NCBI GenBank assembly: GCA_015680685.1
Contig: MNCI01001177.1
Location: forward strand, 466,014-530,013
From: Gnetum montanum
Taxonomy: Eukaryota > Plantae > Gnetophyta
Direction: 5' to 3'
Length of the DNA: 64,000 nucleotides
Shown here: positions 2,199 through 60,659 of the stretch, one piece after another
Layout: every line of letters starts with the position of its first letter
How positions within the stretch are numbered: position 1 is the first letter of the stretch
Position numbers and translations under genes: made by a program
Notes under the pieces: generated by a model
The model's database searches: none
Told to the model about the DNA's origin: nothing
The model's input: the letters and a program-made list of their open reading frames with translations, nothing else

Positions 2199-4222
2199 TG
2201 TTACGCTAAAAACATCGATGGCTAGAACATTGAGAGGTCGTCAGGTGCATAGCCTAATCCCAAGTCTACCAAAGGGCCATGCTAGAAAGGATGGAAATGA
2301 GGCATCCTAAACAGTCTAGTCAATTAGTCATGGACTTATATGATGTCCGATAATCGTTTGCAAATAATGATTTCAGAGCATCACACGTAGGAGTTGGAAT
2401 AAGTAGGAACACAACATGCATAATAGCAAGAAAATATCAACGTGCATGTATCATGACAATAGAAAGAAATAGGTACGTTAATAGTTTAAAATATGTGCTG
2501 TAGAAAAAGAATGAAATGAGAGTGCAAGTGAGGAAATGCACCACCCCAAGATTGGGGGACATGACTTTTGATTGAATGATGTGTACAACTGGTGTGCAAC
2601 ATAGACAGAAATAGCTAGGTAGCAAGGCAATATGGTCACAGTTTCTAGGATGCGGTAGATGTGATATCGGTAGACATGAAGGAGTGGATACTTGTTGGGC
2701 TGAAAGTTGCTATATTGTACATGTGCAGGTGTCACACTTAAGTGCAGGAGTGGAACAAAGATTTGGAAGGCTCTAATGCTGGGATTTTTCACTTATCAAC
2801 CTTTTGCTCACCAATCTTCTGCCAAGGCCAATTGTAAAAGTGAACCCTTAGAACGCTGATTACTGGGGTATTTATAGAGCTAGGGTTGGGGGGGGGGGGA
2901 GAGACGTGGTTTCGACGCCATGTGTCCTAGGTCCCACATAGCATGAACATGGATGTGTCACGCTGATGTGTTATGCTTAAAGTGCGGTGCTATGCTCAAT
3001 AGGAAAAGAATAGGGACTAAAAAATCTGCTAAATCGTGACCATATTGCCCAAATTGCATGTACCAAAGTCTAAAGAACTACCATGTACTTACAAAAATGC
3101 TGAGAACAAATGAAAATTGGAGCCTACACTTCGGGACTACATCTCCCCTTCTCTTTCGAGTAGGATCAAGCGTAGGGACAACTTTGGAGATTAGCAAGGG
3201 GTGCAAAAAATAAAAAAAACTGCTCACTTTGGCCTCTAGAGAGATGCTAGAGTAGGAATGAAGGTCGATGATGAGCTATGGGCATTTTTGGAAGGCATTC
3301 GGAGAAGTTTTCCAAGTGCTACGCTGCCTAGCATAACGAAGCGTAGCATGAACACTTAGAAAATTTTACAATTTTGGTCTTCTACGTTGTCTACATTGCG
3401 CAACGTAGTAGAGTGTAGCACTCCTTTTCCACGAATTTTATCAAAAATTGAAGGCATCACTTTGAGATTTAGCAAGGTAAGCAACTTTAGCAACTAGCAA
3501 CTACATCTTTCATGTTGAAAGAGTCTGATATCTCCTGGTTTCATTTTGGAAAACTTTTGACACTGACATCTCTACTACGCTGCACTACGCTACACAGCGT
3601 AGCATAGCATAACACCTAATTTTGAACAAATTTTAACCCAACTTGCAATGCTTTGCGATGGGACTTTGATCATGGTCTGAGGACGAAATAGGATAGGTAG
3701 CCTTGGAGGTCAAAACCAACTGCACCTTCTATGTCTGGTTCAACACTTAGGAAAATTTTAACCCCACATGGCCTGCTACGCTATCTACACTATGTAGTGT
3801 AGCAGAGCGTAACAGGTCCAAACATAGAAAATTTGCCAAACTTTTTTATCTATCCTAAACAATTTTGACAACTCCTAGCCTAGCATCGGGGTGGACTAGA
3901 AACTGGGACATGTGTCAAGCTGGGTAAGCTAGAGAGCATAGTAAGCTTGATTGCCTGAAAGATAGAAAATTTTTCGAATTGTTTAGTCCACCCTCAGTGT
4001 CGCTTTTGTGCAAACTAGCCTTGAAAATGGGTGCTGCACTAGCTGTGTTGAAGAGTGTAGCAGACAAGCTCAAAAAAAAATTTGTAGATATTACAACTTG
4101 TAAGGTGCTATGCTGTTTGCGTGGCCTAGCATGATACCACACTTGGAGAAATTTTGCCTAGGTCTCAATGCTCGAACAAATTTGATGCTGAGTCACAAGA
4201 GCCCAAAATTGATGGTGATTTA
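2199..4222 (-). repeat. 3' LTR of element A
   Basis: Direct repeat of 21015-23013; TG start; end GGTGATTTA corresponds to GGTGTTTCA in element C; minus-strand TATA (CTATAAATA, ~2869-2877) next to a G tract. Confidence 0.93.
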
Positions 4223-4240
4223 CTAGCCCCTCTTTGTTGA
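4223..4240 (-). promoter_or_regulatory. Polypurine tract of element A
   Basis: Minus strand TCAACAAAGAGGGGCTAG abuts the LTR; the same motif lies beside the LTRs of F (48582) and C (61924). Confidence 0.85.
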
Positions 4241-5178
4241 TGTCTAGAGGATTTGCCCGATAGACGTCGACAAAGAATATGAAACACCATGATGAATATG
4301 ACACCAACACTATTCATCAATGCCTGCTTAGATAATGCTTTTCTATGCTTGAGAGTGCCAGGGAAGTGAAGTATGGTAGGGAGCACGGGATAGGTTTGAG
4401 GAGATGGGGTTAGGGGACAATGGACAAAAAATGAAAAATGTAGGATGCGATGCCATGAGAACCATTGCCATAGTGTGATCCCTCATCGAAATGCTTGTGA
4501 GGGAGTTAGCACGCATAGGCAATTTTTACTTATGGAGTTTGACCTCTTATCAAAGTGCTTGGAGACGCTCGATCCAAGATCAAAATAGTTGTAAAGCGAC
4601 AACTACGCTATTTGACTTAGGCACTTGTCTTATGTCATTTCTTTTTCTTTTTCTTTTTCTTTTCTTCTTGTTCTTTTTTTTCTTCTTTCTCTTCTTTTTT
4701 TATTGTGGATGAATTGCATGCCCATATCTGCTTGAAGGCAACCATGTTGTCGTTGTAGGACAAGTGTTTCCTCCCCAAGATGAGTTGTGTTACATCCGTG
4801 TGGGGCTTTGACCAGCCTACAGAGGCTTCCCATGGGATGAGTTGCATTATGTCTGTCATGGGCTTAGTGATTAAGCATGGAAAAGGGTTTCATGTGCATT
4901 GGAGAAGCTTGCGAGGGGATGTCGAAAATTGCAAAAGTAGGAAATAGAGGTTAGGTTAGTTGAAGGGATATTAGGGTATGCACTCTCAAGTAGCTTGGCC
5001 AATTGAAGCAGGTACTTTGGAACAATGTGGTGTGTTGCTCTTGTGGTGAAATGCATTCTTGAACAATGCCATCTCAGCTTTATCTTGCAAACACAACAGA
5101 GAAAAATCCAAAAAAAACAACCACCATTGGAAGTGAGGATGAAGTCCTATTTGCCCGAGACACTGCAAGGGCTATAAG

Positions 5179-7511: not shown

Positions 7512-10500
7512 TTAGGCATAATACAGTTTCAGGTACATGTGGTTGATAGGATTAGCAAACTCATTGCCATCTAAGTTAGCAAGCTCGAATGCCCCATTTT
7601 CATGTGCTTTTGTGACCAGAAAGGGCTATTCCTAGTTAGCTGAGAATTTGTTCACGGGTTCATGAACAACCTTGAGGACTAGATCCCCTTTTTTGATCGG
7701 GCGTTGGTGCAAATTACAATGATGTTTTTGCCATTGTTTGTCTTCATACCACTTGATACGATTAAGTGTTTGGATGTGCTCCTCCTCCATAGACTCAAGA
7801 TCAGTGATTCTTGACTCGTTGTTTTGAGCCTCATCCATAAAGTTCAAGAGGATCATTCAGAGCTACAGGACCTATAATTCAAGAGGTAACACTACTTCAG
7901 ATCTATATACTAGACTGTATGGTGTCTTACCTGTGTAGTTTTGCACGTTGTGCAATAGGCCCAAAGCACGTAGACGAGTTGCTCATGCCATTGTCACTTG
8001 CTATTACTGAGCATTTTCTTCAAAAGGTTGACAATGGCTTTATTGGTGGCTTCTGCTTGACCTTTTTCTTGAGGATAGTATGGAAATGAGAAAGAGTGTT
8101 TAATGTCAAGGTTTTCACATAAGGCTCTAGTTTTTATGCTACTGAATTAGGGCCCGTTGTTTATAACGATAGTCATAGGAAGGCTGAATTGAGTCACTAT
8201 ATTATCCAAAATGAATTTGCAAACCTGTTGAGATGTGGTCTTCCTAAGGGAAATAACTTCTACCCACTTGGTGAAGTACTCAGTTGTAGTAATAATGAAA
8301 CTATGCCCTATAGAAGACTTGGGCGTTATAGGCCCTATGATGTCTAGTTCCCAACATTGAAAAGGCCACGTGATTTGCTCAGTATGCAACTCAGTAGGTG
8401 ATACATGTATTAGATTCCTATGGTGTTGACATATATTGCATGTCTTGACCTTAGAGAGGAAATTGTGCTCCATATAGGGCCAGTAGTAGCCTAGATGCCT
8501 AATTTTTTCAGCCATAGCTTTAGGAGCTATGTGGCTTCCACATAGTCCCTCGTGGACTTGATCAACGATTCTTTGGGCTTCTTTTCCACTTACGCAAGTT
8601 AGCAGTATCCCATCATAAGATCTACGACATAAAGCACCATCACCTACAAGGACATACTGCCATGCTCGTTTGCATACCACATCTTTTTGGGCAGATGTTA
8701 GGCCTCGTGGATGCTCACCATGTTGGAGGTATGTTTTGACATTGTTATACCATTCTTGAGCATGGGTTGCACTTACAGACGTGATATTTGCTGTGTGAAC
8801 AATAGGGTTAGTGCATTCCACTATTGAAGTAGGTAAGATAACAAACATGTGTGGTGGCATGCTTAAAGTTAACGTGGCTAATGCATTGGCTATAGTGTTT
8901 TCATTGTAGGGGATGTATTGAACGTCTAAGATTGTAAATTATTTTAGTAAGTACTTCACCAAGTCACAATAAGGCTGTAGGTGTTGTGCTTTATAGGTGT
9001 AAGCCTCTGTAACTTGATTGATAACTAATTACGAATTGCCTCGAATTGCTAAATTTTGGATCCCTGACTCCTGAGCTGCTAAAATGCCTGTAAGGAGAGC
9101 CTCATATTCTACTACATTCTTGGTGCAAAGAAACGTGAAGTGGTATGTGAAAGGTTGAATCTCTCTAGAGGGAAATGTGAGAAGAATAGCAGCACTACCA
9201 CCTTGTGTGGTTCAGGCACCATTAAAGTGTAAAATAGCTTCGATGTTTGTAGATATTGTGCTTATATTGTTAACATGATCATTTGGAAATTCGAGTTCCA
9301 TTGTTGCTTGGTCATCTGTGGGTGAAGCTGTAAGTTGCGTGGCTATTGCTTGACCCTTTGTAGATGACTGCACTATGTAGTATAGGTCAAATTCTGCAGT
9401 TATTTCTTTCCACCTGGCTATCCTGCTACTTACATATATATTGGTTGTAATGGCCCTGAGTATGTTATTTTTGCAAATGATATTGACCTGGTTATGAAAC
9501 AAATAGTGTCTCCATTTTTTGAGTGCAAATACTAAAGCAAGGCAATTTTTTTCCACATCATTGTATTTGGCTTCATAAGTTATCAGTGCATGACTCAGGT
9601 AGTAAACAAGAATCTCAAAGCTGTCGTCCCTTTTTTGATAGAGCAAAGCAGCAATGGACATGTCTAAAGTTGCAAGATAAATGTAGGCTTATCTCTTTGT
9701 AAAGGATGAACAAGCTACTTTTAAGTTATCGAATGCTTCTTAACGTTGGTTTATCCATTCAAAGTTAGCTCATTTTTTAAGTAAGTGTTGCATTAGATGC
9801 AATTTATCTGTTAACCTTACAATAAATCTTCGTATGAATTGTATCTTTCCTTGTAATCCACATAACTCTTTAAGTTTTATGGGTGGTGTTGAGTTGATAA
9901 TGGCTTTAACTTTGTCTAGGTCTACACATATTCCTATTTCTGATACTACGAAGCCTAACATACGTACAGTTTTGACATCGAAGACACTTTTTGGGATTGA
10001 GACAAAGGTCATGCCTATGGTAGCATTGAAGGACCAAGTTCAAGATATTTGCATGATTAGGAGCTTTCTTCAATTTAACTGCTATATCGTCCACATAGTC
10101 ATTTAACCATTCCAAAAGATAGTCACTAAAAATGTAAGCCATTGCTTGCTAGTATGCTGCTCCAACATTTTTAGTCCGAAGGGCATCATCGTGTAACAAA
10201 ACCTTCCCTAAGGCATCATGAAGGTAGTAGCAAGTTGATGTTCTAGGTTTATATAGATTTGATTGTATCCTGAGAATCCATCCATGAAGGATAATAAGGC
10301 ATGGTCGACCATAGTATCGACTAGTTGGTCAATATTGGGCAATGGGAAGTTATCCTTGATGGTTACTTTGTTCAAATCTTGGAAGTCTATATAGATGTGT
10401 TTGCCCCCATTTTTCTTGGGGATGACCATGATGTTTGATACCCAATCCATGTAATCGACTGCTCGGATGAATCAAACTTGGTAAAGCTTGGAGATTTTGT

Positions 10501-11011
10501 CACGCACAGCTAATACAATCTCTAGTTTAATTTTGTGAGCTTTTTATTTGACTACTTTGATATGTGAATCTAAGATAATGTTGTGTTGTATTATGCGTGG
10601 GTCTAAGCCCAGCATATCTTCATAAGACCATGCAAACACTTTGACATTATCATTGAAGACTTTAGAGATATTTTGTTGGACTTGTGGCTCTTGTAAAGAC
10701 CTAAGTTTCAATGTTCTTGCCTCACCTCTGCATGTGGTTACGGGAATTTCTATAAGTGGATTCTTAGCTACGTCACTAGCCTCCAGGTCTAAGGCTTGGA
10801 CTAGATGTTCTAGCCAGTCTAGTGATGTTTCTGAGGATGCTATATTGGTGTGACAAGGAGGCAGCTCAAAGTCTATAAGCTCTATGTTCAAGCATCTCAT
10901 GAATTTATCATGGGGTCAAGTCAAGATTAAGGGCGAATGGAGATCATTATGTGCACCCATTCCTAAGCCATTATGCAAAATAGCCAACAAAAAAAAGACA
11001 TCAAGTGGCAC
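7512..11011 (-). pseudogene. pol: Element A pol: RT, RNase H, additional (archaeal-type) RNase H and integrase, with stops and frameshifts
   Basis: RT: DFQDLNK...FPLPNIDQLVD...SFMDGFSGYNQI, YVDDI; RH: YYLSHAL...EKNCLALVFALKKWRHY; aRH ~8870-9230: CTKNVVEYEALLTG, RGNS.LVINQV; INT: HEGLCGSH, CNICQ, WELDIIGPI, EYFTKWVE, KFSAN.E.PF. Confidence 0.92.
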
Positions 11012-11476
11012 CTGCCTAACATAGCAACATGAAGCAAAATGCATGCAAAGTAATTATGCAATATCTTAAAATTGCTAGTTTAAGGTCTTAAGGGACCGTA
11101 ACTACACGTAGGATGTCAAACTATATTTTAAAATTGCTAGTTTAAGGACTTAGTGGACTGTCACTATGCCTATAGTGTAAAGGGAATTTCAAAATTTCCT
11201 ATTTAAGGTCATAACGGATCGTTACAGTGCCTATAGTGTAAAGCCTTAAGCCAATATTAAAGGCTTAAAGTGAGGGGTTGAATTAAATGTTTACAATGAA
11301 AAAATCTCTCTCTTTTTCTAAAAATCTATGTGCTACATTGCAGGGAACATGGGATGTCTTGTGTTACATGTAGGACATGGGGTGTCCCATGTTACGCGTA
11401 GGACACAGGATGTTCTGCGTTATGTGTGAGACATGGGACATCTCGGAAAAGTAACATGTCATGTAGCCCTAAAGGG

Positions 11477-11484
11477 TATAAATA
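11477..11484 (+). promoter_or_regulatory. Candidate TATA box for the antisense gene of element A
   Basis: GGGTATAAATAGGGG, preceded by short CATGGGA repeats (~11345-11445) and followed by GTAAGG/GTAGGT donor-like sites. Confidence 0.4.
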
Positions 11485-12557
11485 GGGGTTTAACCATGGT
11501 AAACCTGTCATTTTCACCATTGGAGCTAATAGCCTATAGTATAGCGTAGTTTCGAGAAGAGAGCATACCACTTGTAGAGCATAACCACTAATAGGCCAAA
11601 ACTTGATAATAAGATAATGGCGTGCAGAAGTGAGCGTAGACATTAGGGCCTTGCAAATGTGGATGAAGGGGAGCACACCTTGCAACATCTTCCTAAAGCA
11701 TGCATTGAGGAACGATATGAGGCACCATCTGCTCGGTAGGCTGCTATGTTACCTTTATTTGTGTTGCATTTTGTTTTGAAATGGGGGCGATCTACCAAGT
11801 GGGATTACTGTGGCCACCGTCTACGCTGTGACCACTACCCCCTAGTTGTGGCTGCTGCAACCACTACGTCATGGTTGCTGCCACGACTGCTATGCTGTGA
11901 CCATTGTCACTGCCATTGCAGCTATCACCATGGCTATTACGCCATGGCCGTAGTTGCCATGATTACGGCCCAGAGAAATGCACCATTTTCTTCCTTTCCC
12001 TCTCATTTTACAGAATAAGGGTTTGAAGTGTCTTGTGCAGTGTAATGCGTGTGGGGAGGGTTTTATTTACTGCGTGTTTGCGTGATGGATTTTTTGTGTT
12101 CCATGCGGTGGAATAGGGTAAGGGCTTCACAAGCGTTTCGTGTTTGCCCTCAGGCTATGTTGTCCCTGACAGCGTGATTGGTAGGTTAGAAATGTTTACT
12201 TGCTTGCATCGCTACACTTTTTGTGAGAGTGATGCTTGCTACGTTACATGGGATGTAGCTGCTACGCTGTACGGGGTGTAGCTACTACGCTACACGAGAC
12301 GTAGTCGCTATGCTACGCATAGGGTTACATTGCTATGCTACACGGAACGCTATATTTGCTACGCTATATGAAAAGTCATAAGGATAGGTTGAATATTTGG
12401 AAAAATTTTGGTTCGATTAATGATCCTATGATTGTCATGTTCCAAACAAGATTGCTACGTTTTATAGAAGAGTGCTACACTACATGGAAGTGTAACTGAT
12501 AGAAATTTTTCAAAAATTTTCCTTATTGTGAACTAATGTTTTCATTGTGAAATGTAG

Positions 12558-15500
12558 TGTTATGCTAAAACCAATCTTGATCATGGTTGAATTAGTAGGG
12601 GTTCTATGTTGTATAAGTGTCCTTGTGCCCAATGTCCCTCCACCACATGCGCGAGTAGGGAACCAGGCAGTCCAGTTCTGAGAGGGTGCACAGGAATCCT
12701 TAGAATTCCTACTTCGTCACTTCAGTGTAATGATATGGTTACACTTGTCTACTGAAGTAGCAGGCATCCTGAGAGAAACATTATTGCATGGAGCAAATCA
12801 AGGCAACTTAAAATTCATGATAAATAGATCTATAGAAGGGGAAGAGGTAGGGGGCTTAAGTCAATGTCCAAAAGGCTTAAGACTCTTGTCTTGGATTTGG
12901 ATGATGCCAAAGTTCAAATGCTATCATAAATGTAACACTTTGTTCATTGCTCGCCATATGGGCACATTTTTTCAAAATCCACCTAGAACCATCTACTATG
13001 TTAGTGGGTGAGTCATATTAATATGATCAAACATTTTATTTTTGCTTGTCTTCTATGATTTGAAATGCTTATTATGTTTTATCAATTGAAAAATTTTTGA
13101 TTGATAAGGATGGTCTTTATAGTAGAGATGGGGCATTAGCCCTAGATCAAATGACCCTTCAAGAGTTCTACTTCGTTGAGGACGTGCGTGCCGGTGTTAT
13201 AAAGGAACTTGGGGTCAATTTTAAAACTTATTCAACCAAGTACTCTAAGTTTTACATGAAGTGTGAGGAGCTTGGGTGGTTGGATGGCAAATGGACATCC
13301 CCTCGAGTACCCATTGTAGAAGAAATACTAGTACAAATACCACCGTTCCCCACACCATTCACACCGGGTGGGTTATATTATGTGTTTCTTTTCATGTAAG
13401 CCAAATTAATTTTTTTATGTGGTTGATTTTATTCTTGGTTATTGCAGTAGCAGCCAAATCTAAGGAGGTTATAGTAATTATCTCAGGGAATAATGAGGCT
13501 AACCTCCTCTTTACGTGATGTGAGGTTGATGAATCATAGCATTGGCTATGTAATGGGGCTCTAGCAACGATTGTCGAGAAGGTTCAGGAGGCTGGGTCCA
13601 TGGATCTCTTTTTGGCTATAAACCCAAGCATCTCAGTTGTAGAAATGATTGTCATTGTCAATTCCTTCACAGAAATTGCTGACCACTTTCATACACGAGT
13701 TCATAATGTGCAAGTCGTGTTTGAGATCATCAATAGTCTTTTTTCAAGTCTCTTAGGTGTCCCCTTCGATGGTTTATCCATGGGGGAAAAGACTAGCAAG
13801 GATCTGAACCATCGAGGAGGCATAGAAGAATGGCTAGGGATTGATAAGGATCACAAAGGTATTTATATGAAAAAGGTTAAATTAGAGGTAGCTCAAAAAA
13901 TTTACCCGGTCTTCCAGGCTCATGCTTTTTCTAAGCTACTTTCCCAAGGAAAAATTCTTGGGGTAGAGTAAACTTGGATTATGAGAGACGTAATGGAAGA
14001 GGGGACACGATATAATTGGGCTAAGTATCTTTCAGAAGGCCTATGGGTTGAAATGACTAGGTTGCGTGGCAAACTTGATACATGTTTCCATGTGCATTTT
14101 TCATTTTTTATAACTTGTTGGCATAGGTTTGCGGAATTTTTGGTGGTCCAAGAGAATGGGTTCTAGGTGCTACAAGATTGTACCTAGATATCCAAGCCTT
14201 GGATCCACCACATATTTTGCACTGTATGGTCTTAAGACCCTCTAGAAGCTATTGGGGAGTCTTTTTCAATGATAACCAAAGATTGGGTGAGACTGTCCTT
14301 TCATGTGCATGATAGCTTTGGAGAGGCTCCACTCACCAACATGGGCAATGTAGTGAGGGGAGCATAGTTTATTGCAAAAATAATAAAGTCAAAATTGTAA
14401 ATTAAGAAGCCCCATCCTGTAGAGGAACCTTCACGTGCGAGCGAAGGAAGGGTCAAAAGGCTATGGATCAGAGTTTGCAATGTGCAGTCTAAGCTTGTTA
14501 GTGAGTATTTCTTAGTTAACTTATTTGCTGCCTTCTTTTTTCTTTTTATGGTTGCATATCTCTATTGGAATAGTACCCTAATCTTTGCTTGTGCTTGGTA
14601 GATGAGGAAGAGGCTTCTACTCTAGAAGAAGAGGCCCCTGCTACAGAAGAGGAGGCCCCTGCTATTAAGGAGGAGGTTCTTACTACATAGGAGTAGGCCC
14701 TCATTGCAGAGGATCCTTTTGTAGATAGTGTTCCACAACTTGAGGGACATATGACAGCAGAGAAAATCGCTACACTCTTAAGGTAGCTTGAAGAAGAGAG
14801 GCTGTGTTTTGAGGATGGTGAGTTTGCTAATTTGTTTGATAGTGTGCCAATGGGTGACCCCCCTGCTCTCACCCCTAAGAGTTTACTGGGTAGGAGCTTT
14901 GCATTGTCATTTATGTTATTCTCTCATTTTTTTCTCTCCTCTTCACAATGCTAACATGCTTTATTGCGTAGCGGTCACTACTTTTACTAAGGGCCCTGAG
15001 TCTTCATCTACTTTCTGCCTAGAGCCATGGGTGGAAACTCTAGATAAGTTTATCTTTATGGAAGGTGTAGTAGATGACATGATTAACCGTCTAAAGTAAA
15101 TTGACCCTGAGATAGGTGTGGTTGGACTATGGAATTTGCTTTTTATATTGTTCCATGTTTGCTACCATCCCATGACTAACACTTTCCTATTTTTGGTGTA
15201 ACAACTTCACGACTTAAATGGGATCCAAAACAAGTAGTTGAAGTCGAAGCTATACCTAAACTCCCTCCAGAGGTAACAGAGGTGCCTCGTCATATATATG
15301 ATGAGGCAAGCATATGTGCGCTACACTTGGCACGATCATTGTGGGAGTGTAGACGTGTTAATAAAGACCTCTGGAAACAAGTTTAGAAACTCAAGAAGAA
15401 AAAGGCAAGTCAGGCAGCTGAGCTAGAAGACTTGTAGTCATGAAATGAATTCCTAATGGCTCATGAGAATTCTGATGGTGGTTGGTGTATGGTCGTAATT

Positions 15501-16025
15501 GATTATGCTAGATATTGGTTGGCCGTATGAGGGAAAAATGAGGCCATGCACGAAGTAATTGAACAACATCTAGAAATGGATCTTTTGGCACAAAAGAATC
15601 AAGATTAGAAAGATTATAGTGCCTAGGTATATGAATGGGGGCAAGCACAGAAGAATCATAAACATATGTATAAAATGAAATGTTCTGCTTATCACCAAAA
15701 ATACTGAGATGCATCTATAGAATTCCGTGGTCGTGAGTTGTTCCTTGATGCGCTTGGTGCTACCTAGGCCTATGATAAATTCATGAAGCATTTAGTGGTC
15801 AGTGAATTTCCTGAGAGGGAAAAGACTATGCCTTATGGGGAGGCCACCTCTGCTACCTTTTCTCCAGGGCCATCCACATGGACGATTGTGGGGAAAGGAA
15901 AAATTTTAGCAGGCATTGATTTGGGTGAAAAATATTGGGTAAATTTAACTAAGGAAGAAATCCTCCAACGCTTAGCATATGGCCTTGACAAGATACCACC
16001 AGACATGGATGCAAGCCCATGTTAA
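12558..16025 (+). pseudogene. Antisense multi-exon gene of element A: FCP1/NIF-like pseudophosphatase + transposon-protein-like domain + acidic tract + coiled coil
   Basis: Exons ~12558-13007, ~13091-13367, 13448-14500, 14602-~14889, ~14972-15114, ~15202-16025, mostly with GT/AG borders; aligns by eye, exon by exon, with 57107-60586; premature stops present. Confidence 0.8.
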
Positions 16026-16369
16026 GTTAGCCAAGTTTTAGTTTATTGCAATTTATTTCATGATAGCCTTATGCATTACCTTGCTCACTCATTGATTTAT
16101 TGTCTCATTCTTGATTCATGTAGGATCCCATCGAGTATGTAGGACCTAGTGGGGTAGTGGACAAGGACACAGGAGAAGACCCATAGCCTCTTCATTGATG
16201 TTCTACAATTTTAAAATGTAATCTCCATTGTTGAGCGATGTTACAACTCTAAGTGTGGACATAATTTTGGACTATGTATTTGTCGTTTAATGAAAAGTGA
16301 GATGCTTGTTTTATTTCCTTTACCTAATGTTTTTGTTGATGTATTTAGGACCCTTGTGGATCCCATGTT

Positions 16370-16582
16370 ATAGTTTAAGGCCTTTCCAGGCTGTAGCTAG
16401 TTTAAGGCCATTTTGGGTTGTAGCTAGTTTAAGGCCATTTTGGGCCATGGGTAGTTAACACAAAGAGTGGGTTGCCAATTTTAGGCCTTGGTGGGGCATG
16501 TGATAGTTTAAGGCCATTTCGGGCCGTGGCTAGTTTAAGGCCATTTCGGGCTGTGGCTAGTTTAAGGCCATTTCGGGCCATA
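16370..16582. repeat. ~30-bp tandem repeat GCTAGTTTAAGGCCATTTCGGG; related units at 11070-11230
   Basis: At least six AGTTTAAGGCC units; explains the spurious ARNGLKLAT repeat ORF. Confidence 0.85.
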
Positions 16583-16705
16583 GCAGTATAACTAACACAA
16601 AAGGTAAACACAATGAAAAATTGAAACCTATACAAAAAAATGTTAAAAACAAAAGAATCGAAGAAGTAAAATAGGGCCATGCCTAATCGTGTAACTGTTT
16701 CCTAC

Positions 16706-19700
16706 CCTGATGTGGGTTAGGCGAGGCGTATGGCCTGGAGGACTTAAAGTGATATTCCTCTAAGTTATCATCAGCTGTTGAAAAAGGGAACTATGTCCAC
16801 ATAGTTTCTTTGTGCAGGTTGTCAGTTTTGTCGAGCTTATTGGCAGGGCAACATTGGTTTCAATGTGGATAGGTGACATGCCTTTGGAGATTTCTATCTT
16901 CAACCCTTGCTTCATGTTTATGTTGTTTATAGCTTGAGGGGCTATATCATCGCTGAAGATCACCACTTTTCTACCTGCATAGGGTAGATGGATCTCTTGG
17001 TCTATTGGCAAAGAGATAGCCCTTAGTTGGGCTAACCATGATCCTCCCAAGATCAAATTGAACCCATGCATCTCTTCTATCACAATGAATTCTGCATTAG
17101 TGGGGAATTGATCCCCTACTACAAAGTTAACAGTGACGGTCCCCTTGATCACAATGCATGCCCCGTTGAAGGACTTCAAATAAGAAGTTGTCGTGGGCTT
17201 GATCTGGTCCACTAGGTCTAGCTTGTCAACAACAAGGAACAAGATCACATTGGTTGTGGCTTCATCATCAACGTGCACCCTACGAATCTTGTATTGACCT
17301 ACACGAATTATTATAAATGTAGGAGTAGTGCTTACCGACCCTTTTTGGAGTTAACTTTAATAGATTCATTATGAAAATTTAAGCGAGTTGCCTGTGGTTC
17401 TTCAGCTATATGTGGGAGCATAACAACATGAATGGCTCTTTCCTTTGCTGGCATGTCTTCCTTAATAGGGATAAATGCCATCATGCGGATCAAAGCTTCA
17501 CGGTGCACCATGGAGGTCATTATTAAATCGTAGAAGCTTAATGTTGTATTTTTTTGTTTTAAAGCTTATTTAACCTATGTAAGGATGTCTAGAAAGTCTT
17601 GCCCAATGCTCGGTGGTTTTTTAGTTTTTACTTCCTCCATGTTCCTTGAGAGACGAATTCCTTGAAGAAAAGAGGACTTGGCTTTTGGTTGAGTGGCAAG
17701 CTTTTAAGCCTCACTAGTTGCTTGTTGTTAATGCATTTTTGTTTTATCTTTAGATTGTGAGGCCATGGGAATTGTTGATAAAGGGATGGACTTAGGGGGG
17801 CCTAGCGCAGTATGTTCCTTAGTCATCTTATCCACTCATCATGTTTTCTTAGGAAAGGAAGTTTTGATGCAGTTCCAACCATTGGACTTTGGGCAAGTGG
17901 TGAGTTTGTATGCTTTGGTACCCTTATAACAAAAGGTGCTTACGTTGTTGTAACAGTGCATTGAGGGGCCTTAATTACGAAAGGTGTGATGGGCCCCTAT
18001 GACGATATCTTAATGACAAAAGGGGGCTATGGCCTAGACAATGTTGAAGTTTTGGCACTCTAAGAAGGCACATGGACCACAAAAGGATTATGTGTAGATT
18101 CTATACTATCACCAACGCTAATAGTATTAATAGTATAGTCCACACTATTAGCATTTAATGGGTCTTTATAAACATTCATTGACTGGTTTTTTGGCCATAT
18201 AGGACTAGTTTTGTCAAGAACCAGCTTACCTTGATCAATCATACGTTGGATATCATCTTTCAATGCCAAGCAATAGTCAGTGCCATGACCACACAACTGG
18301 TGGTAGTTACAGAATCATTCAAGCCTAAAATTTTTAGGCACGGGAGACTTGTTAGGCATGGCTATAGAGGGGTCTTGAAGGATCTCACAATACCTCTCAT
18401 GATGCTTACGGGCCTCCTCTGACATTTGCTTATATTGAATGCACCCAGCATTATATAGTTGATTCAGCAGCTTCGATAGTTTAATTGGAAATAGTGTGTA
18501 CTTTGAGTGATCCTTATGCTCAAAATTTAGCCTTGGCGAGGTTTGTGTTGCGACTGTTAATGCTAGAGGTTGGCTAGCTCCTGCGTTGCTAGAGCTTGGA
18601 ATTTTAGTGGTAGCGGTCATGGCCTTAGGTGTTTTGGCTACATGCTTGTTATTATTGGGCTTAGTTTCATTAGCTACAACAGCCATAGTGGTTGTTGCAG
18701 CCTTGCCCTTTTCCTTTTTTTTCTTTGCATGTGTGTTTTTGTAAGCTACATAAGCTGGGTCTCTACTAGCCTCTGTTGCATCTTGTATACTTTTTGTTTG
18801 TGCAAAAGCTTGGCTAAGAGAGCATGATGCTAAATAATACAACTTAGACTTAATAAATTCATTCACAGCACCCTTAAAAATAGCAAGTAAATGGGCTTTT
18901 GCAATTGGTTCATGAATTTCATTTAGGGTAGTGCTCCAGCGTTGTATGAATTTCTAGACAGATTCTAACGGTTCTTGTTTGACATTCATAAGTTGGTCTA
19001 AGGTGACCTCTAGCTTCAAGTTGTACTTAAAGCGAGTCACAAACTAACTTAACAACTCTTCTAATGTTGAAATAAATGTGTAATGAAGCACATGATACTA
19101 GTTGAATGCTTTTCCAGTTAAGGACATGGTGAAAACACGAATGATTGCATGTGGCCATGGTTGTAGTAATAAGGACTCAGATATAAAAGTAACTAAGTGG
19201 GCATTTGGATCACCCTCTCCATTGTATTTTGTGAACTGGGGAAGTTTCACCCCAGGGGGTAATGTAAGCGAAGGAACAACTGGGCTAATAAGGTCATCAT
19301 GATAAAAGTCCATTACTTAGACTATTTCAGAGCCTATGACTTTAAGCCACTTAACTTCATTGGTGAGGGTTTGAATGAGTTGAAAGGCTTGGTCTAGACT
19401 TAGGGATGCTACAGAAGGTTGCGTGAGTTGAACTGCTAGTGGTAATGCTAGAGCAGTCATCATTGGTGGTGTTGTTGGTATAGCCGTTGGTCCCATTGGG
19501 GGTGTTGTCGGAGCCACTCCCATTGGTGGCACTGTCTAGGTGGCCCACAATCCTATGGGTGGTGTTGTTGAAGCGGCTACCATTGGTGGTGCTATGGGAA
19601 TGGTTACTTGCCCTGTTGTCAGAGTAGCCCATAGCCTTGTAGTTGGTTGCATCATATGTGAAGCTTGATACGTTTGGGGTTGTATATACTGTGGCATCTG

Positions 19701-20400
19701 AGGCATTTGGATAGTAGAAAAGGATGTTGCTATCCACCATGCAATTGAGGTTGGGGTTGTTGCTGATAGTGGAATTGGCATAGAAGAGGTAATGGAAATA
19801 GGGCTTATATGTGATTGTGATGTAGGCATGGTATGTACATATGGCAGTGTAGGCATTACAAATGTTGGCTACACAACTTGAATGGACTATGAAGGGATGA
19901 TAAAGGGAAACGAAGTTGAAGATCCTACATGTTGCTATGTTGATAGCATTTGGTGGCTACCTACCACCAAGGAAGGTTTGGGCTATGAAAGCATTGTAGC
20001 TATTGCCAAAGAGGCAGAGGACTATAGCTAGTGCGGAAAGAACATAGAAGTGGACTATGAGGTAGTGATGTAAATTGGGCCACCACCTTCGGAATGGCAC
20101 TCAAATTCCTATTTCCCATCATGGAGGGGTTCATCATAATGAGACACAGTGTCTTGCTCTTTTGACCACTTAGTCAAATATGTTAATTCAATATACATTG
20201 AAACATTTCAGTGAGTGGTATGATAGCATCAGGAGTAAGAAGGAACTCCCTCCTATTCCGGTGAATAATTTCAAAGTTATGCTTTTCTTCAAATTCCTGA
20301 CGGTCCAACGATAGGCCTGCTTAGATCCTTGCACATAAGAAGCTATATCACTCTTCATCACAAGCCGTGTATTCAAGTGATTGATGTTGTAGTTAAAGAG
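16706..20400 (-). pseudogene. gag: Element A gag and aspartic protease
   Basis: LPQFTKYNGEGDPNAHL...FTMSLTGKA (retrotransposon gag); Ogre/Retand-type Zn knuckle CNYH..CGHGTDYCLALKDDIQRMIDQGKL; protease VHVDDEATTNVI...FNLILGGSWL; Pro/Thr-rich N-terminus; 5' limit approximate. Confidence 0.85.
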
Positions 20401-21014: not shown

Positions 21015-23013
21015 TGTTGTGTCTGAAAATGTCGATGGTTGGAACACTGAGAGGTTGTTAGGTGCACCGCCTAACCCTAAGTCCACCGGAGGGCCGTGCT
21101 AGAAAGGATAGAAATGGGGCACCTTGAACAGTCTAGTTGATTAGTCAGGGACTTATGTGGTGTCCAATAACCATTTACGAATAATGATTTTAGAGCATCA
21201 CATGCAGGAGTTGGAATAAGCACGAACGCAACATGCATAACATTAAGAAAATATCAACGTGCGTGTATCATGACAATAGAAATAAATAGGTACGTTAATA
21301 GTTTAAAATATGTGCTATAATAAAAGAATGAAATGAGAGTACAAGTGAGTAAATGCATTGCCCCAAGATTGGGGGATGTGACTTTTGATTGAATGATGTG
21401 TACAATTGGTGTGCAGCATAGATAGAAATAGCTAGATAGCAAGGCAATATGGTCATAGTTTCTGTGGCACTACAAATGTGATGTCAGTAGAAATGAAGGA
21501 GTAGATGCTTATTGGGTTGAAACTTGCTATGCTATGCATGTGCGAGTGTCACGCTCAAGTGTAGGAGTGGAACAAGGATTTGGAAGTCTCTAATGCTAGG
21601 ATTTGCTGCTTATCAACCTTTTGCTCACCAATCTTCTGCTAAGGTCAACAACAAAAGCTAACCCTTAGAACGTTGATTACTAGGGTATTTATAAAGCTAG
21701 GGTTGGGGGGGGGGGGGGGGGGGGGAGATGTGGTTTCGATGCCATGTGTCCTAGGTCCCACATAGCACCAACATGAATGTATAATGTTGATGTGCTACGC
21801 TCAAAGTGTGGTGCTACACTCAATAGGACAAGAATAGGGACTAAAAAATTTGTCAAACTATGACCATATTGTCCAAACCACATGTGCCAAAGTTTGAAGA
21901 ACTACCATGTACCTACAAAAATGCTTAGAAAAAATGCAAATTGGAGCCTACACTTTGGGACTACGTCTTCCCTTCTCTTTTGAATAGGATCAAGCATAGG
22001 GACAACTTTGGGGATTAGCAAGAGGTGCAAAAAACAAAACAAACTACTCACTTTGGTTGCCAGAGAGATGCTGGAGCAGGAATGAAGGTCGATGATGAGC
22101 TCTAGGCATTTTTGGAAGGCATTTAGAGAAGTTTTCCAAGTGCTACGCTATCTACGTTTCCTAGCGTAATGAAGCATAGCATGAACACTTAGAAAATTTT
22201 GTAGTTTTGGTCTGCTACGCTATCTACGTTGCATAGTGTGCTAGAGCATAGAACTCATTTTCCATGAATTTTGTTAAAAAACTGAAGACATCACTTTGAG
22301 ATTTAGCAAGGCAAGCAACTTCAATAACTAGTAATTACATCTTTCAACATTGGCACCTATGGTATGCTGTGCTACGCTGCACAGCATAACACAGTGTAAC
22401 ACCTAATTTTGAACAAATTTAACCCCACTCGCAATGCTTTTGCATGGGACCTTGATCATGCTTTGAGGAAAAAGTAGGACAAGCATCCTTGGAGGTTGAA
22501 GAATTGCCAAATGCACCTTCTATGTCTGGTTTAACACTTAGGAAAATTTTACCCCAACATGGCTTGCTAGTCTATCTACATTGTGCAGCGTAGAGAAGCA
22601 TAATAGGTCCAAACATATAAAATTTTCCAGACTGTTTTGTCCATCTTGAACACTTTTGACAACTCCTAGCCTAGCATCAGGGTGGATTGGCAACTGGGAC
22701 ATGTGTCAATTTGGGCAAGCTAGAGAGCATAGAAAACTTGACATCCCAGAAGATAGAAAATTTGTTGAATTTTTTAGTCCATCCTCAGTGTCCCTTTTAT
22801 GCAAAATGGCCTTGAAAATGGGTGCTACGCTAGTTGTATTGAAGAGTATAGTAGAAAAGCTTAGAAAAATCTTTGTAGACATTAGGACTTCTAGGGTGCC
22901 ATGTTGTCTATGCGGCCTAGCGTGACACCATACTTGGAGAAATTTTGCCTAGGTCTCAATGCTTGAACAAATTTGATGTTGAGTCACAAGAGTCCAAAAT
23001 TGATGGTGTTTTA
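21015..23013 (-). repeat. 5' LTR of element A
   Basis: Direct repeat of 2199-4222, followed by TSD GGGAT. Confidence 0.93.
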
Positions 23014-23018
23014 GGGAT

Positions 23019-24110: not shown

Positions 24111-26259
24111 CTATGGTCAAAACATAACCAAGGATTAGTATTCAATGTGTAACTTATAATATTTAAGTACCTTTCTCATTGGGTAGTTAAACTAAGTTTT
24201 GACCATGGCATATTGATTATTTTATTATTATTTTATTGCTATTTCACTTAGAATGTCATCGAAGCTTGTTGTGAAGGTTTAACTTGTATAATTTGATGTT
24301 TTAATGTTGATTTCTTTGTTAAACCTTATGGGAGTTAGAACTTTTTTTGAAAATTTTTTCATCAAAAACATAAGGTTTGTATCCCCCACAACAAAGAGCT
24401 TACCTCCAGTAGCTACATGTCAAAGAATGAAATGAATCAAACAAACCATTAGGAAGATACGGCTCTTGGAAGGTTTTGGGCTTTGAAAAATTGAAAAAAA
24501 AAAAACTCCCCCTTGTTTTGAAGCAAATGTAAAAATCACTAAGTGTGGTCACCTATATATAGGTGGGTGGATCCCTGCATCAATAGGATCTCGTATATAG
24601 GATCCTATTTACACATGGGCTTCATTGATGGGTACCCATTTACGGAGCCTATGCCCAAACTTTTCCACTTTGAAAAATATGAAAAATAGAGAGAGTTTAA
24701 ACATGAAATTGATGTTTTTGAAGACCCAGAAAAGCTGTGAACATGATGAAATGCTAGAATAGAGCTTGGAATATCAAAAAATTGGAGAATTTGATTAGAG
24801 AATGAAATTTAATTGGAAAAAATGCCTTAAGGAGCACATAGTTGGATGCATCAATGGGGAGCACAAAATATCTGATCACCGAAATACCTAAGGATAAGGA
24901 ACTTAACTAACCCAACCAAGAGATATGCAAGTGGGTCCTTCCCACAATAGGCTCATGTTCTTTTTTCCCTTGAATAACCTCAACTAAGGAGTCCATGAGC
25001 CGCACAATTGATTAATGGTTGTGAAAAGTTAAGGATCAAATTTGAAAGAATCTACCTAAGAATTTTGACACTTCAAACTAAGACATTGAAGAAGAAGATG
25101 AATAATTGGTAGTGAGGTGAGTTATGACAAGCATGATGGATGAGAGAGAAAATGGAATGGAATTCCTGATTGTGGTCACATGAATTTCCTTGTAGATTTT
25201 ATGGTTAAATGACTCGATAAAGTCCATCCTTAGTCTAGATCAAAACCAACCACTTTCAGTGACTTCGCATTGCCACTCTAAGACCAAATCACCTCCTCAA
25301 GACATAAGAATGCTCCCACAGATCAATCAACATTCCTTATTTGAGAAGAAAAGAGAAGTAGGAAGTGAGAAAGGGCCTTAGTTAGAGGGAACTTTTAGGC
25401 ATGGGTAACATGTCTTTCTAGTTCCATAACCAATGCTTGTAGCCCATTATTTTTATCTAAGGGATGTGCTTTGAATTTCCATCATGTTTTCTTTTGAATT
25501 TTATGTTTTTATGGATTTTTGGATGGGAACCACATCATGCAAAGACGTATTAACTTCTTGTTGTTGGTTGACATGGAATGGTAAGAAATCCATGAAAACA
25601 CAATTGCACTCTAGTAAGTAGAAAGGTATAGAGATCATTGAATCCCCTTGAAGTCACACCTTTTTCAACCCTTTGAATCATTCCTAGGTTTGGAAACTAC
25701 CAAGGTCACAAGTTCATTAAATTTTTGTTTAAGTTTCATTAAGGAAAATAAGAACTCATATTTCCAAAACTAGGAAGACCATAGAGTTTGTGGATGGGTG
25801 GATGATATGGACTCATTGCTTGTTCCATGAAAAAGAAACTTTATCTTAGTCATCAGTCATCAAAGTTCAAAAATAGAAACTAGACATTTAGCAATCAAAA
25901 ACATTAAGTACAAACCACTATTAGCAAACAACTATAACATCACTATGTTCTATTGACAATAAAGTAATTTATTAGAAAATAAGAAAATTTCACACAAAAA
26001 TAAATTAAAATATAAAAGAAGTTGTAAAATATTCAAGAAAGATAAAATGTACTAATGATGTTGTAAAACTATAAATGGGAAAATAACAAAGTGTAAAACA
26101 AAAAGGTGTAAAATTAATAAAGTGTAAAAAAAAAGGCATAAAACAAAGAAAGTGTAAAAAAAAATTGTAAAAAATAAAGAGACACTTGTATGATTAGCAT
26201 AGATGACAATCTCCCCCACAACTAAGTTGAAAGGAGGAGATTTGAAAGATTGAACGAGC

Positions 26260-28946
26260 TTGTTCATCCGATGAGGTGTTGCTTGCACTTTTAGGCTCAT
26301 GGAAAGGTTTAAGTTGTTGAATGTTGGCTAGTTGTTTTTTGTTTAGGCTCTTAGGTTTATAGATCAACATGATCCTAGAAGAAAAGGTTTCATAAATAAT
26401 ATAAGGTTCTTCCCACAACATTTGAAACTTAGTCTTTTGGGGTACATGTGTGGGGTTCTAGTACAGGACCTTGTCTCTAGGTTGAAATTTAACTTTCCTT
26501 ATTCTAAGGTCATGGCACTTCTTGTTGAATGATTTGTGCACTTCATTCAAGGAAAAAGCTACCAATAATTCTCATCTAGTACATTAAAGTTGATTAATCT
26601 TTCTTTTTGTGCTAGGCTAAGATCAAGATCAAGGTCACAGGTGGTTGAAAGTATATGAAGCTCAGATTGAATTGGAAGAGTTGGTAATTTTTTGTACACT
26701 AGCTCGTAGGGAGAGTATCCTATAGGGAGTGTCCATGTTGAGTGGTATGCATAGAGGGCATCGTTAAGTTTTTTTCTGCAATCTCTCCTATATTTGCTAA
26801 TTGTTCTATTCAAGATCTTGGTGACCTTTGCTTGATTGTTGGCTTGGAAGTGGTAGGGTGTTGTTAGTTTATGTTCAACCCCCAAGTGTTGCATGAGCTT
26901 GCGAAAAGTAGAAGTTGTAAAATGAGTACCATTGTCAAAAATTAGTACATGTGGCATTTCAAACCTATTTATAACATTGTATTGTATAAACTGAGTAGCA
27001 ATGGAAGATGTACAGTCAGTGACGAATGTTGCTTCTGCCCATTTTGTACAATAGTTAACAATGAATATTATGTACACCTTTTCATTTAACATGGGCACAA
27101 TGGAACCCATGAAGTATATGCCCCAAATGTCGAAGGGTTTCAATGGTTGAATCCACTATTGAGGCCCCTCCATTCAAGTGGTTAGCCCACCATCTTATTG
27201 ACAACATTCACAAGAGCAGATGAATTGGTGAGTATCCTTGAAGATTGTTGGCCAATAATATGCTACCATTAGCATCTTAATGGTTATGTGTCTCCCTGTA
27301 TAGTGGCCTCCACAAGGACCCTCATGAGCATCTTGGAGAACATGCAATTGATCAGCATGATGAACACACCAATGAACCAGGGCATTGATGCATAGCTTGT
27401 AAAGGTGTCCATTAATCTCAATGAAGGGTTTGGTTTGATGAAGAAACTATTGTTTCCTCTAGTGATCCAAGTCTTGTGGCATCTCCTTAGTGAGAAGATA
27501 AGTAAGGATGCCATCGTACCATGTAGGTTTAGTGGACACTTGTTTATTTATTGCACTGGCAAAGAAGAGTTCATTAGGAAATTGATTAGAGAGTGGGCTC
27601 TCTACCTCTTTGTTGTCCCATCCTAACTGAGACAGGTGGTTAGTGATCACGTTCTTAGTTTCTTTTTGATCTACGATTATAAAAAAAACTCCTGTAAGAT
27701 CACTAGCGATCATATGACATGGGTCTCACCATCAACTTATTCATGAGGAAGTGAATGACATTGTGATTAGTATGCACAAACATCTTGTATCCAAGTAAAT
27801 TGTGCCTGAACTTCTCTAAGGCATACACCACTATCATCAGCTCTTTCTCCATTGTGGTGTAGTTAAGCTATGTACCCACAATGCTTCGACTTATGTAGTG
27901 GATGTAATAAGTATGTTTCTAATTGTTCAATTATGTAAGCATAGCTCCCAAGGCATAGTTCAACACATTTGTCATGATGTGAAATGGACGAGACTAGTTA
28001 GGTGCTCATAGAATTGAAGTTTCTACATGATTCTCCTTAAGTTGTTGGAATGCCTTTTTGCATTTCTTGGTTCATATGAATGAAGAATCTTTCTTTATAA
28101 GCTCAACCAATGATTTAGTGATCTTAGAGAAAAGTGAGGGTATTTAAGGAATCATTGGACATCTTTAACAGTTTCTAGTTTATGGGTTATTCTTTGGATG
28201 ATTCTAATCTTTTTAGGGTTCACGTCAATCCCTACTTGTGAGATTCTATGCCCTGACATAATGTCCTCTTAGATCATCAGATGGCTCTTTTGTAAATTGA
28301 GCCAAAGATCTCCATGCACCTTTTAAGCACTTACTCAAGGCAGTCCAAGGCTTGCTCAAATGTAGAGCCATAGGTTGAGAAGTCATCCATGGAGACATCC
28401 ATCTCATTACTAATTTGTTGCTGAAAAATACTTAGGACAAGGCGTTAGAATGTTGTAGGGGCCTTGTACAAACCAAAAGACATATTTTTATATGTAAAAG
28501 TTCTCCAAGGACTTGTGAATGTTCTATTGGCCTGATCCTCTAGTGCAATCTGAATTTGGTTATAGTTACTATAACTATCTAGAAAGCTGTAATAACAATG
28601 CCTAGAGCTAGTGTCCAACACTTGGTTCACAAATGGTAATGGGAAATGATCTTTGTAGGTTGCCACATTCAATAGCTTGAATTCAATATAGATCCTCCAT
28701 TTTCCACCTTTCTTTAGCACAATTACAAGTGGGATAACCCACTCGCTATTCATGATTAGATACATGAACCATGCCTCGAGGAGTTGTCCAATTTCCTATT
28801 TGTTGATATGCTTCAATTTGAGGTTAAGTTGCTGCTATGGCTACCTCTTTGGCATGATGGAAGGATCAATATAGATGTAATACTTGCATATCTTAGGATC
28901 AATCATAGTGAGTTCAAGATATGACCAAGCAAAGGCTATTGGCCAT
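26260..28946 (-). pseudogene. pol: Element D pol fragment (RT-RH-INT), Athila-like, cut at 28946 by element B
   Basis: SEWVIPLVIVLKKGGKWRI...KDHFPLPFVNQVLD...YSFLDSYSNYNQI; PFDIWGI.FMG, NYCTKWAEA, DNGTHF, LTTPYH.QAN, LWEEPY. Confidence 0.9.
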
Positions 28947-29846
28947 TGATGAATCATGGATTGGATTCATTGACTAGGCCTTGTCAGTTAGGCCCCATTG
29001 ACTAGACCTTGTCGAGTAGGCCCCGTTGATGCAGATTTGATGTGTTGATGTGGCCCCATCAACATAATATATATTTTCACCTATAAATATGTGCTCATCC
29101 ACCATGTTTATGGCATGTCTTATCATAGTTGTAGCAGAGCTATTGTAGTTTTTTCATTTGGAAGTTAGAATATTTTTTTAAGTGCTTGCAGTAAGAGTCA
29201 AGAGTGTATGGATCTTTATTTAAGCATTGCTGTACTTGAGCACAATAGTGTGTTCAGCAATAAAGATGAGCTTGTTGATAAACCTTGTAGCACTTGAAAA
29301 TAGATTAATTATTTATTTATGCATTTAATATTTTATGAGATTTCCTTTAATGCTTTAAGTAATTAAATAATTAATTAGGCTAAGCTAAGCTAGATAAGTA
29401 GCGATTAATTAAGCACATATGTATGACTGCTTCAAGCATATGCTTAGTGCTTGGTAATCCTAGTGATGCTTAACGTTTGGTAACCCAATAGAACTAAATG
29501 TGTTTAGTATGTGTACAGCAAGTGGGAATAGATGCTTATGTCAGGATTAGTTAGGTTAGTTAGTTAAGTTAAATTAACAATTAAATTACTTCATTACTTT
29601 CATCCTTTTTTCTAAGCACTTGAAACGTAAAACATAATAATAATAAAATTATATGCCTTGATTACACTTAACCATACCTTTGTACATCACAAGTGTACTT
29701 GGGAAGATAACAAATGACTGTTAGGATAAGTTCACTTCTTGGAGACTAGTATACTGGAAGATATAGAATTCATGGAATTCAACTAGATCGCACATGAACA
29801 CTTAGTGATTCGTATGGTTGAGTGTAGGGGTACTCATTACTCATCA
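28947..29846 (+). repeat. 5' LTR of element B (TGAT...ATCA)
   Basis: TGATGAATCATG start, CTATAAATA at ~29081, end TACTCATCA; homologous to the LTRs at 36664, 40765 and 41239. Confidence 0.85.
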
Positions 29847-52965: not shown

Positions 52966-53120
52966 CTGCATGCAAACCAAAAGCATATTAAGTGGGACCT
53001 GGGTAAATAAAATTTAGTAAATCATGCTTAAAATGATATAAAATCATGTAAATATGCTTTATTCTAGTGCAAATAAGATCAAGCATATTTACACTAATCA
53101 TGTAAATATGCTTTTTTTGC

Positions 53121-60586: not shown

Positions 60587-60659
60587 TAACTTTTACATTT
60601 TCCATTTTTGAAGCTTTAGTTATTTTTTTTTTAGTTTTAGGTGTTTTTTTTATCAAGTT

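Follow-up and report, generated by a model that had tools for sequence, protein, structure and literature searches.

A 64,000-nucleotide stretch of the Gnetum montanum genome (contig MNCI01001177.1, positions 466,014 to 530,013 of the forward strand; hereafter the window) carries on its minus strand a Tat-type long terminal repeat (LTR) retrotransposon of about 20.8 kb, element A, within which a gene with five or more coding blocks was located on the plus strand at 12558-16025, between the minus-strand protease (PR) and pol. This gene is probably the dead copy of a real accessory gene, held antisense in the gap between gag-PR and pol by a lineage of Tat-clade Ty3/gypsy elements, with introns of its own and a NIF-like pseudoenzyme as part of its product. 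An initial annotation, made from the sequence of the window alone, had placed the gene between PR and reverse transcriptase (RT); it does lie between the end of PR at 16760 and the start of pol at about 10915, and all of the peptide strings quoted in that annotation were recovered from the plus strand where they had been reported.

Five coding blocks, E1 to E5, were delineated in the copy of element A (Table 1). E1 opens at 12558 directly past a TGTAG acceptor and reads VMLKPILIMVELVGVLC...AVQF*EGAQESLEFLLRHFSVMIW...YHKCNTLFIARHMGTFFQNPPRTIYY, the asterisk marking its single in-frame stop (12679-12681). This acceptor implies a putative 5' exon further upstream. E4 includes the acidic EEEAPA repeat that had been described from the translation, a 21-bp repeat at 14607-14676 according to Tandem Repeats Finder, and E5 is rich in Lys and Glu before a conserved C-terminal block that ends in the terminal stop (16023-16025). 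At least six coding exons had been claimed; the count stands at five blocks together with the unplaced 5' exon, and the higher number may come from a division of the 320-codon E3, a single exon that is interrupted by stops. With 18 in-frame stops in approximately 940 codons, copy A is a pseudogene, and its decay fits the 18% divergence between the LTRs of the element.

A homologous antisense gene was found beside a second element, F (Table 1), on the same strand and in the same position relative to RT as in A. The RT and integrase region of F (49676-52875) shares approximately 65% DNA identity with that of A, and the pol proteins are 42-67% identical. The gene of F contains more stops than the copy in A and at least two frameshifts; the antisense gene of A is now dead, as is the copy in F. 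No PR or gag was recognisable to the right of the F gene (60600-63400). The position between PR and RT thus holds by check in A only, F showing the RT side only.

Comparison of the two copies by blastn revealed no similarity across the antisense-gene interval. At the protein level, twelve colinear blocks, that of E2 included, were aligned with 28-67% amino-acid identity and E values down to 4e-13, obtained in a tiny search space. The match of E2 to F 57659-57853 is weak (Smith-Waterman score 63, shuffles 25.9 ± 4.5), and E5 is homologous to F 59793-60538. Over 419 aligned codons, A/F identity at codon positions 1, 2 and 3 was 0.52, 0.65 and 0.38 respectively. As the choice of blocks by protein similarity could bias such a pattern, it was checked on a stretch of E3 of 672 nt (A 13681-14352) that aligns to F without a gap, where every 90-nt window displayed the same codon periodicity. 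The periodicity extended to the part in which BLAST preferred the -1 frame and in which the original frame has three stops per copy. The codon-position pattern, the conserved exon borders described below and the match confined to protein indicate that selection at the protein level maintained the gene in two lineages. A conserved frameshift had been considered for the region where the -1 frame is open in both copies (A 14127-14309, F 58714-58872), and was ruled out by the codon periodicity for the original frame.

Most in-frame stops fall at different codons in A and F, as is expected from independent decay of the two copies. Three stops occur within the same stretch of approximately 35 codons of E3 in each copy, and two stops of E3 occupy homologous codons (A 13969-13971 and F 58556-58558; A 14233-14235 and F 58820-58822). 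The stop codons at these two sites differ between the copies, being TAA/TAG and TAA/TGA (A/F). The shared stops may reflect independent decay at conserved codons that lie one step from a stop, perhaps by parallel C>T changes, or something odder.

The identity of E1 was assessed with a 109-residue piece (12682-13008) as phmmer query against 1.84 billion representative proteins. Three matches were returned, one of which, P0003, is real (E 1.7e-5); the other two, P0001 and P0002, are internally repetitive (12 and 6 stretches) and were rejected as artefacts. P0003 comes from a metagenome; Pfam recognises NIF in it twice (3.8e-35), its DIDET motif is intact, and a member of its cluster is named as a TFIIF-interacting carboxy-terminal domain (CTD) phosphatase-like protein. 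A hidden Markov model (HMM) of P0003 relatives scored 23.5 bits for the whole of E1 from A, with X at the stop, and 16.1 bits for F, which is no independent witness of the likeness, being homologous to A; the maximum among 4000 shuffled sequences was 5.3 bits. Local hhalign of the A+F alignment with the P0003 subfamily yielded a probability of 96.4% over 87 columns, which begin at the helix that precedes motif II, where ESLEFLLRHFSVMIW pairs with FLSYLFKHFNVSLWT, and reach motif IV, where NTLFIAR pairs with NTILIDD; the global alignment (94.5%) placed ELVGV on DIDET. These profile comparisons suggest that E1 is very probably homologous to the NIF domain. The P0003 subfamily is itself small and metagenomic, with DIDET intact and the domain sometimes present as a tandem duplicate within one protein.

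In common with the FCP1/SCP phosphatases of HAD type (NIF, PF03031), the profile of E1 is colinear from the helix preceding motif II through motif IV, with typical spacing from the motif I strand. Unlike them, E1 has ELVGV in place of DxDxT, altered motifs II and IV, and fails the Pfam model. As had been annotated, the string VELVGV is common to A and F (F 57102-57173) and the motif IV aspartates are absent from both. In motif I the nucleophile Asp is replaced by E, the acid/base Asp by V and the Thr by V in both copies. The Thr of motif II, which in A falls within SVMIWL, is Leu in A and Ser in F, and the DD of motif IV is AR in A (NTLFIAR) and VV in F (NNTFMVV*, followed by a stop). HAD phosphatases without these residues perform no phospho-aspartyl chemistry, and on these replacements such catalysis by the E1 product would be excluded. 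No other part of the protein is as well conserved as the block around motif I (amino-acid identity 67%, codon position 2 identical at 92% and position 3 at 42%). The same loss in both copies, together with this conservation, indicates that the non-catalytic state predates the A/F split and was itself constrained, which upholds the proposal that loss of catalysis is ancestral and not a product of decay.

A domain with the string EGT.(Y/F)NWA at its end, here part of E3, was proposed to resemble the plant mobile domain (PMD). The strings are present, EGTRYNWA in A corresponding to EGTWFNWA in F, and a comparison by eye, without statistics, with the PMD-C sequences of AtMAIN and AtMAIL1 (table S9 of PMC7156037) identified five colinear landmarks of similar spacing. 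These pair HFH... with TFH..., LLGVPFDG with ILGLAVDG, EEWL with AKWL, EGTRYNWA with AGEYAWGA, and ITCWHRF with LQCWSYF, with a W-to-W spacing of 34 in E3 and 33 in PMD-C. On these landmarks E3 is somewhat likelier to be a PMD than to be anything else, the Pfam side of the claim having failed as described below.

Splicing of the antisense gene is predicted from conserved borders and base composition. TGTAG stands right before E1 in both copies, and E1 is followed in the same phase by a donor (A, GG|GTGAGT; F, GG|GTAAGC). Putative intron 1 has a counterpart of 100 nt in F. An AG likewise stands right before the conserved (H/E)WL that opens E3 in A and F; the putative intron 3 is 80 nt long, with a GC content of 0.30 and a T content of 0.51. 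The exons of copy A have GC contents of 0.41-0.47, compared with 0.22 and 0.30 for the putative introns. GC-poor, T-rich introns beside richer exons are the usual contrast in plant genes. The exact joint of E1 and E2 differs between the copies, the frame being kept in A only by a phase-0 donor, TAT|GTTAGT, and the donor of E2 is uncertain.

Several results weigh against the reading of the locus as an accessory gene with a NIF-like domain. Only two copies are readable within the window, and both are dead. No first exon upstream of E1 is conserved between A and F, leaving the start codon of the gene unplaced; an ATG occurs at 12562 in A and five codons further in for F. In Pfam scans that took in 24 exon pieces of A and F, NIF (PF03031) matched no stop-to-stop piece of either copy at E values up to 10, and PMD (PF10536) matched none of the pieces 13540-13968, 13972-14163 and 14127-14309, nor those of F. 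Searches of the PDB with phmmer and hmmsearch found no sequence match for the E1 piece or the A+F profile beyond a chance oxidoreductase (E 0.91). The alignment of motif I is of low confidence, local hhalign of the motif I piece failing, and the score of P0003 sums two domain matches, its single BLAST high-scoring pair of 39.7 bits not being significant library-wide. The NIF link runs through the one narrow P0003 subfamily, for a member of which, P0012, phmmer likewise found no PDB sequence match.

No plant homologue was found in sets of 1.84e9 and 5.8e9 proteins or in metagenome DNA. The exon-3 piece and the A+F alignment of exon 3 returned no homologous protein among targets 0.55-1.75 times the query length, and two metagenome scans with the A+F alignments of exons 1 and 3 gave pattern matches and no relative by tblastn. 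In the ESM Atlas, the exon-1 and exon-3 pieces had sub-threshold, unrelated matches only. The structure models, a check that had been proposed for E1, were uninformative. AlphaFold modelled the E1 piece from the A+F alignment only with a mean confidence (pLDDT) of 38.5; with NIF relatives in the alignment, and hence not independently of NIF, it gave alternating helix and strand in a fragment without strand 1 (pLDDT 59.7), for which Foldseek returned weak thioredoxin-like alpha/beta matches and no HAD/NIF fold at E ≤ 0.001. The FCP1/NIF identity first assigned to E1 is thus borne out by phmmer, HMM and hhalign, and not by Pfam, the PDB or structure models.

Spliced plus-strand reads, a further check suggested in the initial annotation, were not found. 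The 5,501 letters of 11400-16900 were compared at 85% likeness with four RNA runs bearing the same species label, of which approximately one quarter was read for each of three and approximately 2% for the fourth. Between 21 and 101 reads per run fell on this interval, mostly partial and less than 90% alike, so that almost no RNA was present, and no splice joint was observed on either strand. Only the 27-bp array at 16371-16578 was covered, by reads of both mate orientations and many variants, which probably come from many genomic copies. Given the partial reading of the runs and the age of the copy, this result is no evidence that the family is silent.

Were the NIF likeness of E1 due to chance or to single motifs, the gene would be an ordinary PMD/coiled-coil extra open reading frame (ORF) of the Tat/Ogre kind that had been relocated. 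ORFs with a PMD, or with a PMD and a coiled coil, have been reported from Tat lineages and from 57% of Ogre elements (PMC4408406, PMC6317226), and the lack of a Pfam NIF match, the failed structure tests and the dependence on one metagenomic subfamily without a PDB match would all agree with such an origin. It is nevertheless unlikely, since the library-wide E value fell on a family that had been predicted beforehand, the alignment is colinear over all 87 columns from motif II to motif IV, the bit scores of both copies stand well clear of the shuffled controls, and the hhalign probability reaches 96%. The PMD on which this explanation would depend is, moreover, itself confirmed by no model.

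Less likely still is a passenger, that is, a fragment of a host gene caught once by an ancestral element and decaying slowly without a role. LTR elements are known to capture genes (PMC7264820), and dead copies, missing catalytic residues and undetected expression of the A copy are what a passenger would display. Against this stand the codon-position pattern, which is that of purifying selection, and the 672 nt that remained free of indels between lineages whose RT DNA is just 65% identical. The motif I block would not be expected to be the best conserved, at its second codon positions above all, in a passenger that is non-catalytic, and no homologue of a captured host gene was found in the protein libraries. 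Insertion of a nested DNA transposon into the ancestral element, for instance a PMD-bearing MULE (PMD being tied to MULE transposons also; PMC4408406, PMC9289625), is very improbable, as neither terminal inverted repeats nor a target-site duplication (TSD) was found around the cassette (10900-16760), the outcome that the initial annotation had required of an element gene, no transposase domain was found by Pfam in the exon pieces, and both of the divergent elements hold the gene in one and the same place and orientation with respect to RT. Even if the cassette did arrive in this way, it has from then on been multiplied along with the element.

For the element that carries the accessory gene, self-comparison of the window revealed direct repeats of 2 kb, 82% identical, at 2206-4222 and 21023-23013. 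TGTT opens both LTRs, and the 5-bp TSD GGGAT occupies both outer flanks (2194-2198 and 23014-23018). Paired LTRs and the TSD show element A to be one complete minus-strand insertion, 20,815 bp long. A purine tract resembling a polypurine tract, AAAGAGGGG in minus-strand reading, abuts the inner side of the left LTR (4223-4245). In pol, Pfam identified RVT_1 (10208-10450), a gypsy-type RT_RNaseH (9215-9688, E 2.6e-19) and, after the second RNase H, Integrase_H2C2 and rve (8147-8860). That second, archaeal-type RNase H was detected as RVT_3 at 9032-9211 with E 0.0021, a 60-residue fragment scoring 18.4 bits where the cut-off is 21.6. A second RNase H of archaeal type, placed after that of gypsy type and before the integrase, marks the Tat clade in the form seen in angiosperm Ogre/Retand elements (PMC4408406, PMC6317226), and element A displays this order. 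It also has PR together with gag and apart from pol, as in that clade, PR (17278-16760) being recognised by an ILGGSWL-type motif and its place after gag alone, with no Pfam match. The gap between the stop of PR at 16760 and the start of pol similarity to F (10894-10915) is approximately 5.8 kb.

Ogre elements likewise have separate gag-PR and pol ORFs; the gap between the two, non-coding in the sense direction, averages 274 bp and is a spliced intron (Neumann 2003; Steinbauerova 2008; in PMC6317226). The gap in A differs in holding a whole antisense gene within approximately 5.8 kb, and its sense intron is predicted from signals. Just upstream of pol on the minus strand (A approximately 11015-10960, F 52995-52945), both elements have CAGGT(G/C)CCACTT(G/A)AT, then a T-run, TTTGCAT and AG. 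This motif with its pyrimidine tract and AG is a candidate acceptor for an Ogre-type sense intron enclosing the antisense gene, which it fits and does not prove.

The intact gene would have encoded a product of approximately 900 residues consisting of a NIF/FCP1-type HAD-like domain, the contribution of a short linker exon, a PMD-like domain of approximately 320 residues, an acidic repeat and a charged C-terminal region. Its introns would survive retrotransposition, being antisense to the genomic RNA and hence unspliceable from it. In active elements the protein would be made from an antisense promoter of its own, and the sense transcript would have to lose the whole 5.8-kb interval, in the manner of Ogre, to fuse gag-PR to pol. 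Acting without catalysis, the protein may serve as a binding module, most plausibly one that influences in the nucleus how the element is transcribed or silenced, as PMD proteins with their phosphatase-like partner would suggest by analogy. The roles first suggested for it, in phospho-CTD binding, as a decoy or in anti-silencing, are pure inference. A more far-reaching proposal is that a Tat/Ogre lineage keeps a host-like spliced antisense gene within its gag-PR/pol intron, the dead CTD-phosphatase fold and PMD of which form an element-encoded regulator. The regulator might mimic the host PMD-phosphatase module for silencing or act as its decoy, or it might bind phospho-CTD and thereby steer RNA polymerase II, IV or V at the element; this proposal must be regarded as doubtful.

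Retention of the fold without the catalytic aspartates would have a parallel in Tim50 and other NIF-fold proteins, in which it persists as a module for binding. Tim50, a receptor for import into mitochondria, is no transposon protein. Spliced antisense genes of retroelements also have precedent, in HBZ of HTLV-1. Grande gene23 and the antisense genes of RIRE2 and Retand (PMC7264820) are likewise opposite to gag-pol and presumably have an internal promoter; they and HBZ differ from the gene of A in their position, at the 3' end or in the LTR, and in encoding unrelated proteins.

Among the non-canonical domains of Gypsy elements, the PMD is the most frequent (PMC9289625, PMC6317226). In Tat lineages, extra ORFs for a PMD, or for a PMD plus coiled coil, occupy either of two places, being in sense when upstream of gag and antisense when they fall between pol and the 3' LTR (PMC4408406). 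The Tat/Ogre elements that carry them (Steinbauerova 2011; Ustyantsev 2015, PMC4408406; Neumann 2019, PMC6317226) share with element A the clade, the dual RNase H and the giant size, and the ORFs resemble its gene in their blank function, sometimes antisense orientation, and PMD-like centre followed by a charged or coiled C-terminal part. They were identified as single ORFs of at least 250 codons, whereas the gene of A has its place between PR and RT, consists of exons separated by introns and encodes an N-terminal NIF-like domain; its membership of the PMD family has no Pfam support. Among host genes, MAIN and MAIL1, whose proteins bear a PMD, cooperate with the phosphatase-like PP7L, and fusions of PMD and phosphatase arose repeatedly (PMC7156037). 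MAIN/MAIL1-PP7L and the MAIL3 PMD-PPP fusions (Nicolau 2020, PMC7156037) combine a PMD with a phosphatase-type domain, in trans or in cis, and act on transposable element silencing and gene expression. There the fold is PPP/metallophosphatase rather than HAD/NIF and the genes belong to the host, whereas the PMD of A would be an element-borne one recognised by eye.

The initial annotation knew of no described LTR-retrotransposon accessory gene of this type. Full-text literature searches that paired either CTD phosphatase or NLI interacting factor with LTR retrotransposon, with additional ORF or with PMD brought up none, and the text of a domain screen of 121 genomes names no NIF or HAD domain. 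The PR-RT position, the introns and the NIF-like domain of the antisense gene appear to be new; extra ORFs with PMD and coiled coil have been described before from Tat/Ogre elements. Many giant plant retrotransposons carry extra ORFs, which are functionally blank, and the large surveys sought only ORFs of 250 codons or more that are unspliced and lie outside the polyprotein region (PMC6317226), a search by which a spliced antisense gene in the gap would be missed. If active copies exist, PMD-type accessory proteins would gain a second recognisable domain, from a family that reads or removes CTD phosphates, here without catalysis. The parallel with the MAIN/MAIL1-PP7L pairing in silencing offers a testable hypothesis of counter-regulation by the transposon, and antisense placement would be a way for a retroelement to carry an intron-containing gene stably.

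Table 1. Features of element A and of the antisense genes of elements A and F, in positions of the window.
Feature	Position	Strand	Remarks
3' LTR of element A	2199-4222	minus	Self-comparison and reading of the ends
pol of element A	7635-10915	minus	RT, two RNase H and integrase by Pfam
E1, NIF/FCP1-like	12558-13007	plus	TGTAG acceptor before, GG|GTGAGT after
Putative intron 1	13008-13108	plus	101 nt; GC 0.22, T 0.475
E2, linker	13109 to ~13380	plus	~90 codons, stop-free; 3' border uncertain
E3, PMD-like by eye	13540 to ~14497	plus	~320 codons in one frame, six in-frame stops; 3' border uncertain
E4, acidic	~14578-14886	plus	Three stops; borders approximate
E5	15180-16025	plus	~281 codons in one frame, eight stops
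27-bp tandem array, 7.8 copies	16371-16578		Between end of antisense gene and PR
gag and PR ORFs of element A	16760-19856	minus	PR ORF 17278-16760; no Pfam match
5' LTR of element A	21015-23013	minus	82% identical to 3' LTR
Homologous antisense gene, element F	57102-60538	plus	Protein blocks colinear with A

Further repeats were observed in the window. Between the RT and the antisense gene of F, a tandem array with a period of approximately 190 bp and copies 75-80% alike occupies 53120-54305; arrays within giant Tat elements are known (PMC6317226). An integrase fragment on the minus strand at 63347-64000, whose protein is 48-64% identical to that of A 7635-8146, is the sign of a further related element at the edge of the window, and part of the interval between this fragment and the F gene (60600-63400) translates as a proline/tyrosine-rich repeat. 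Two 2.8-kb repeats with 75% identity lie in inverted orientation at 26190-28947 and 36103-33332, with a third related copy at 42447-43857. These repeats contain integrase/RT-like ORFs with 22-47% protein identity to A and represent a different retroelement family without the antisense gene.

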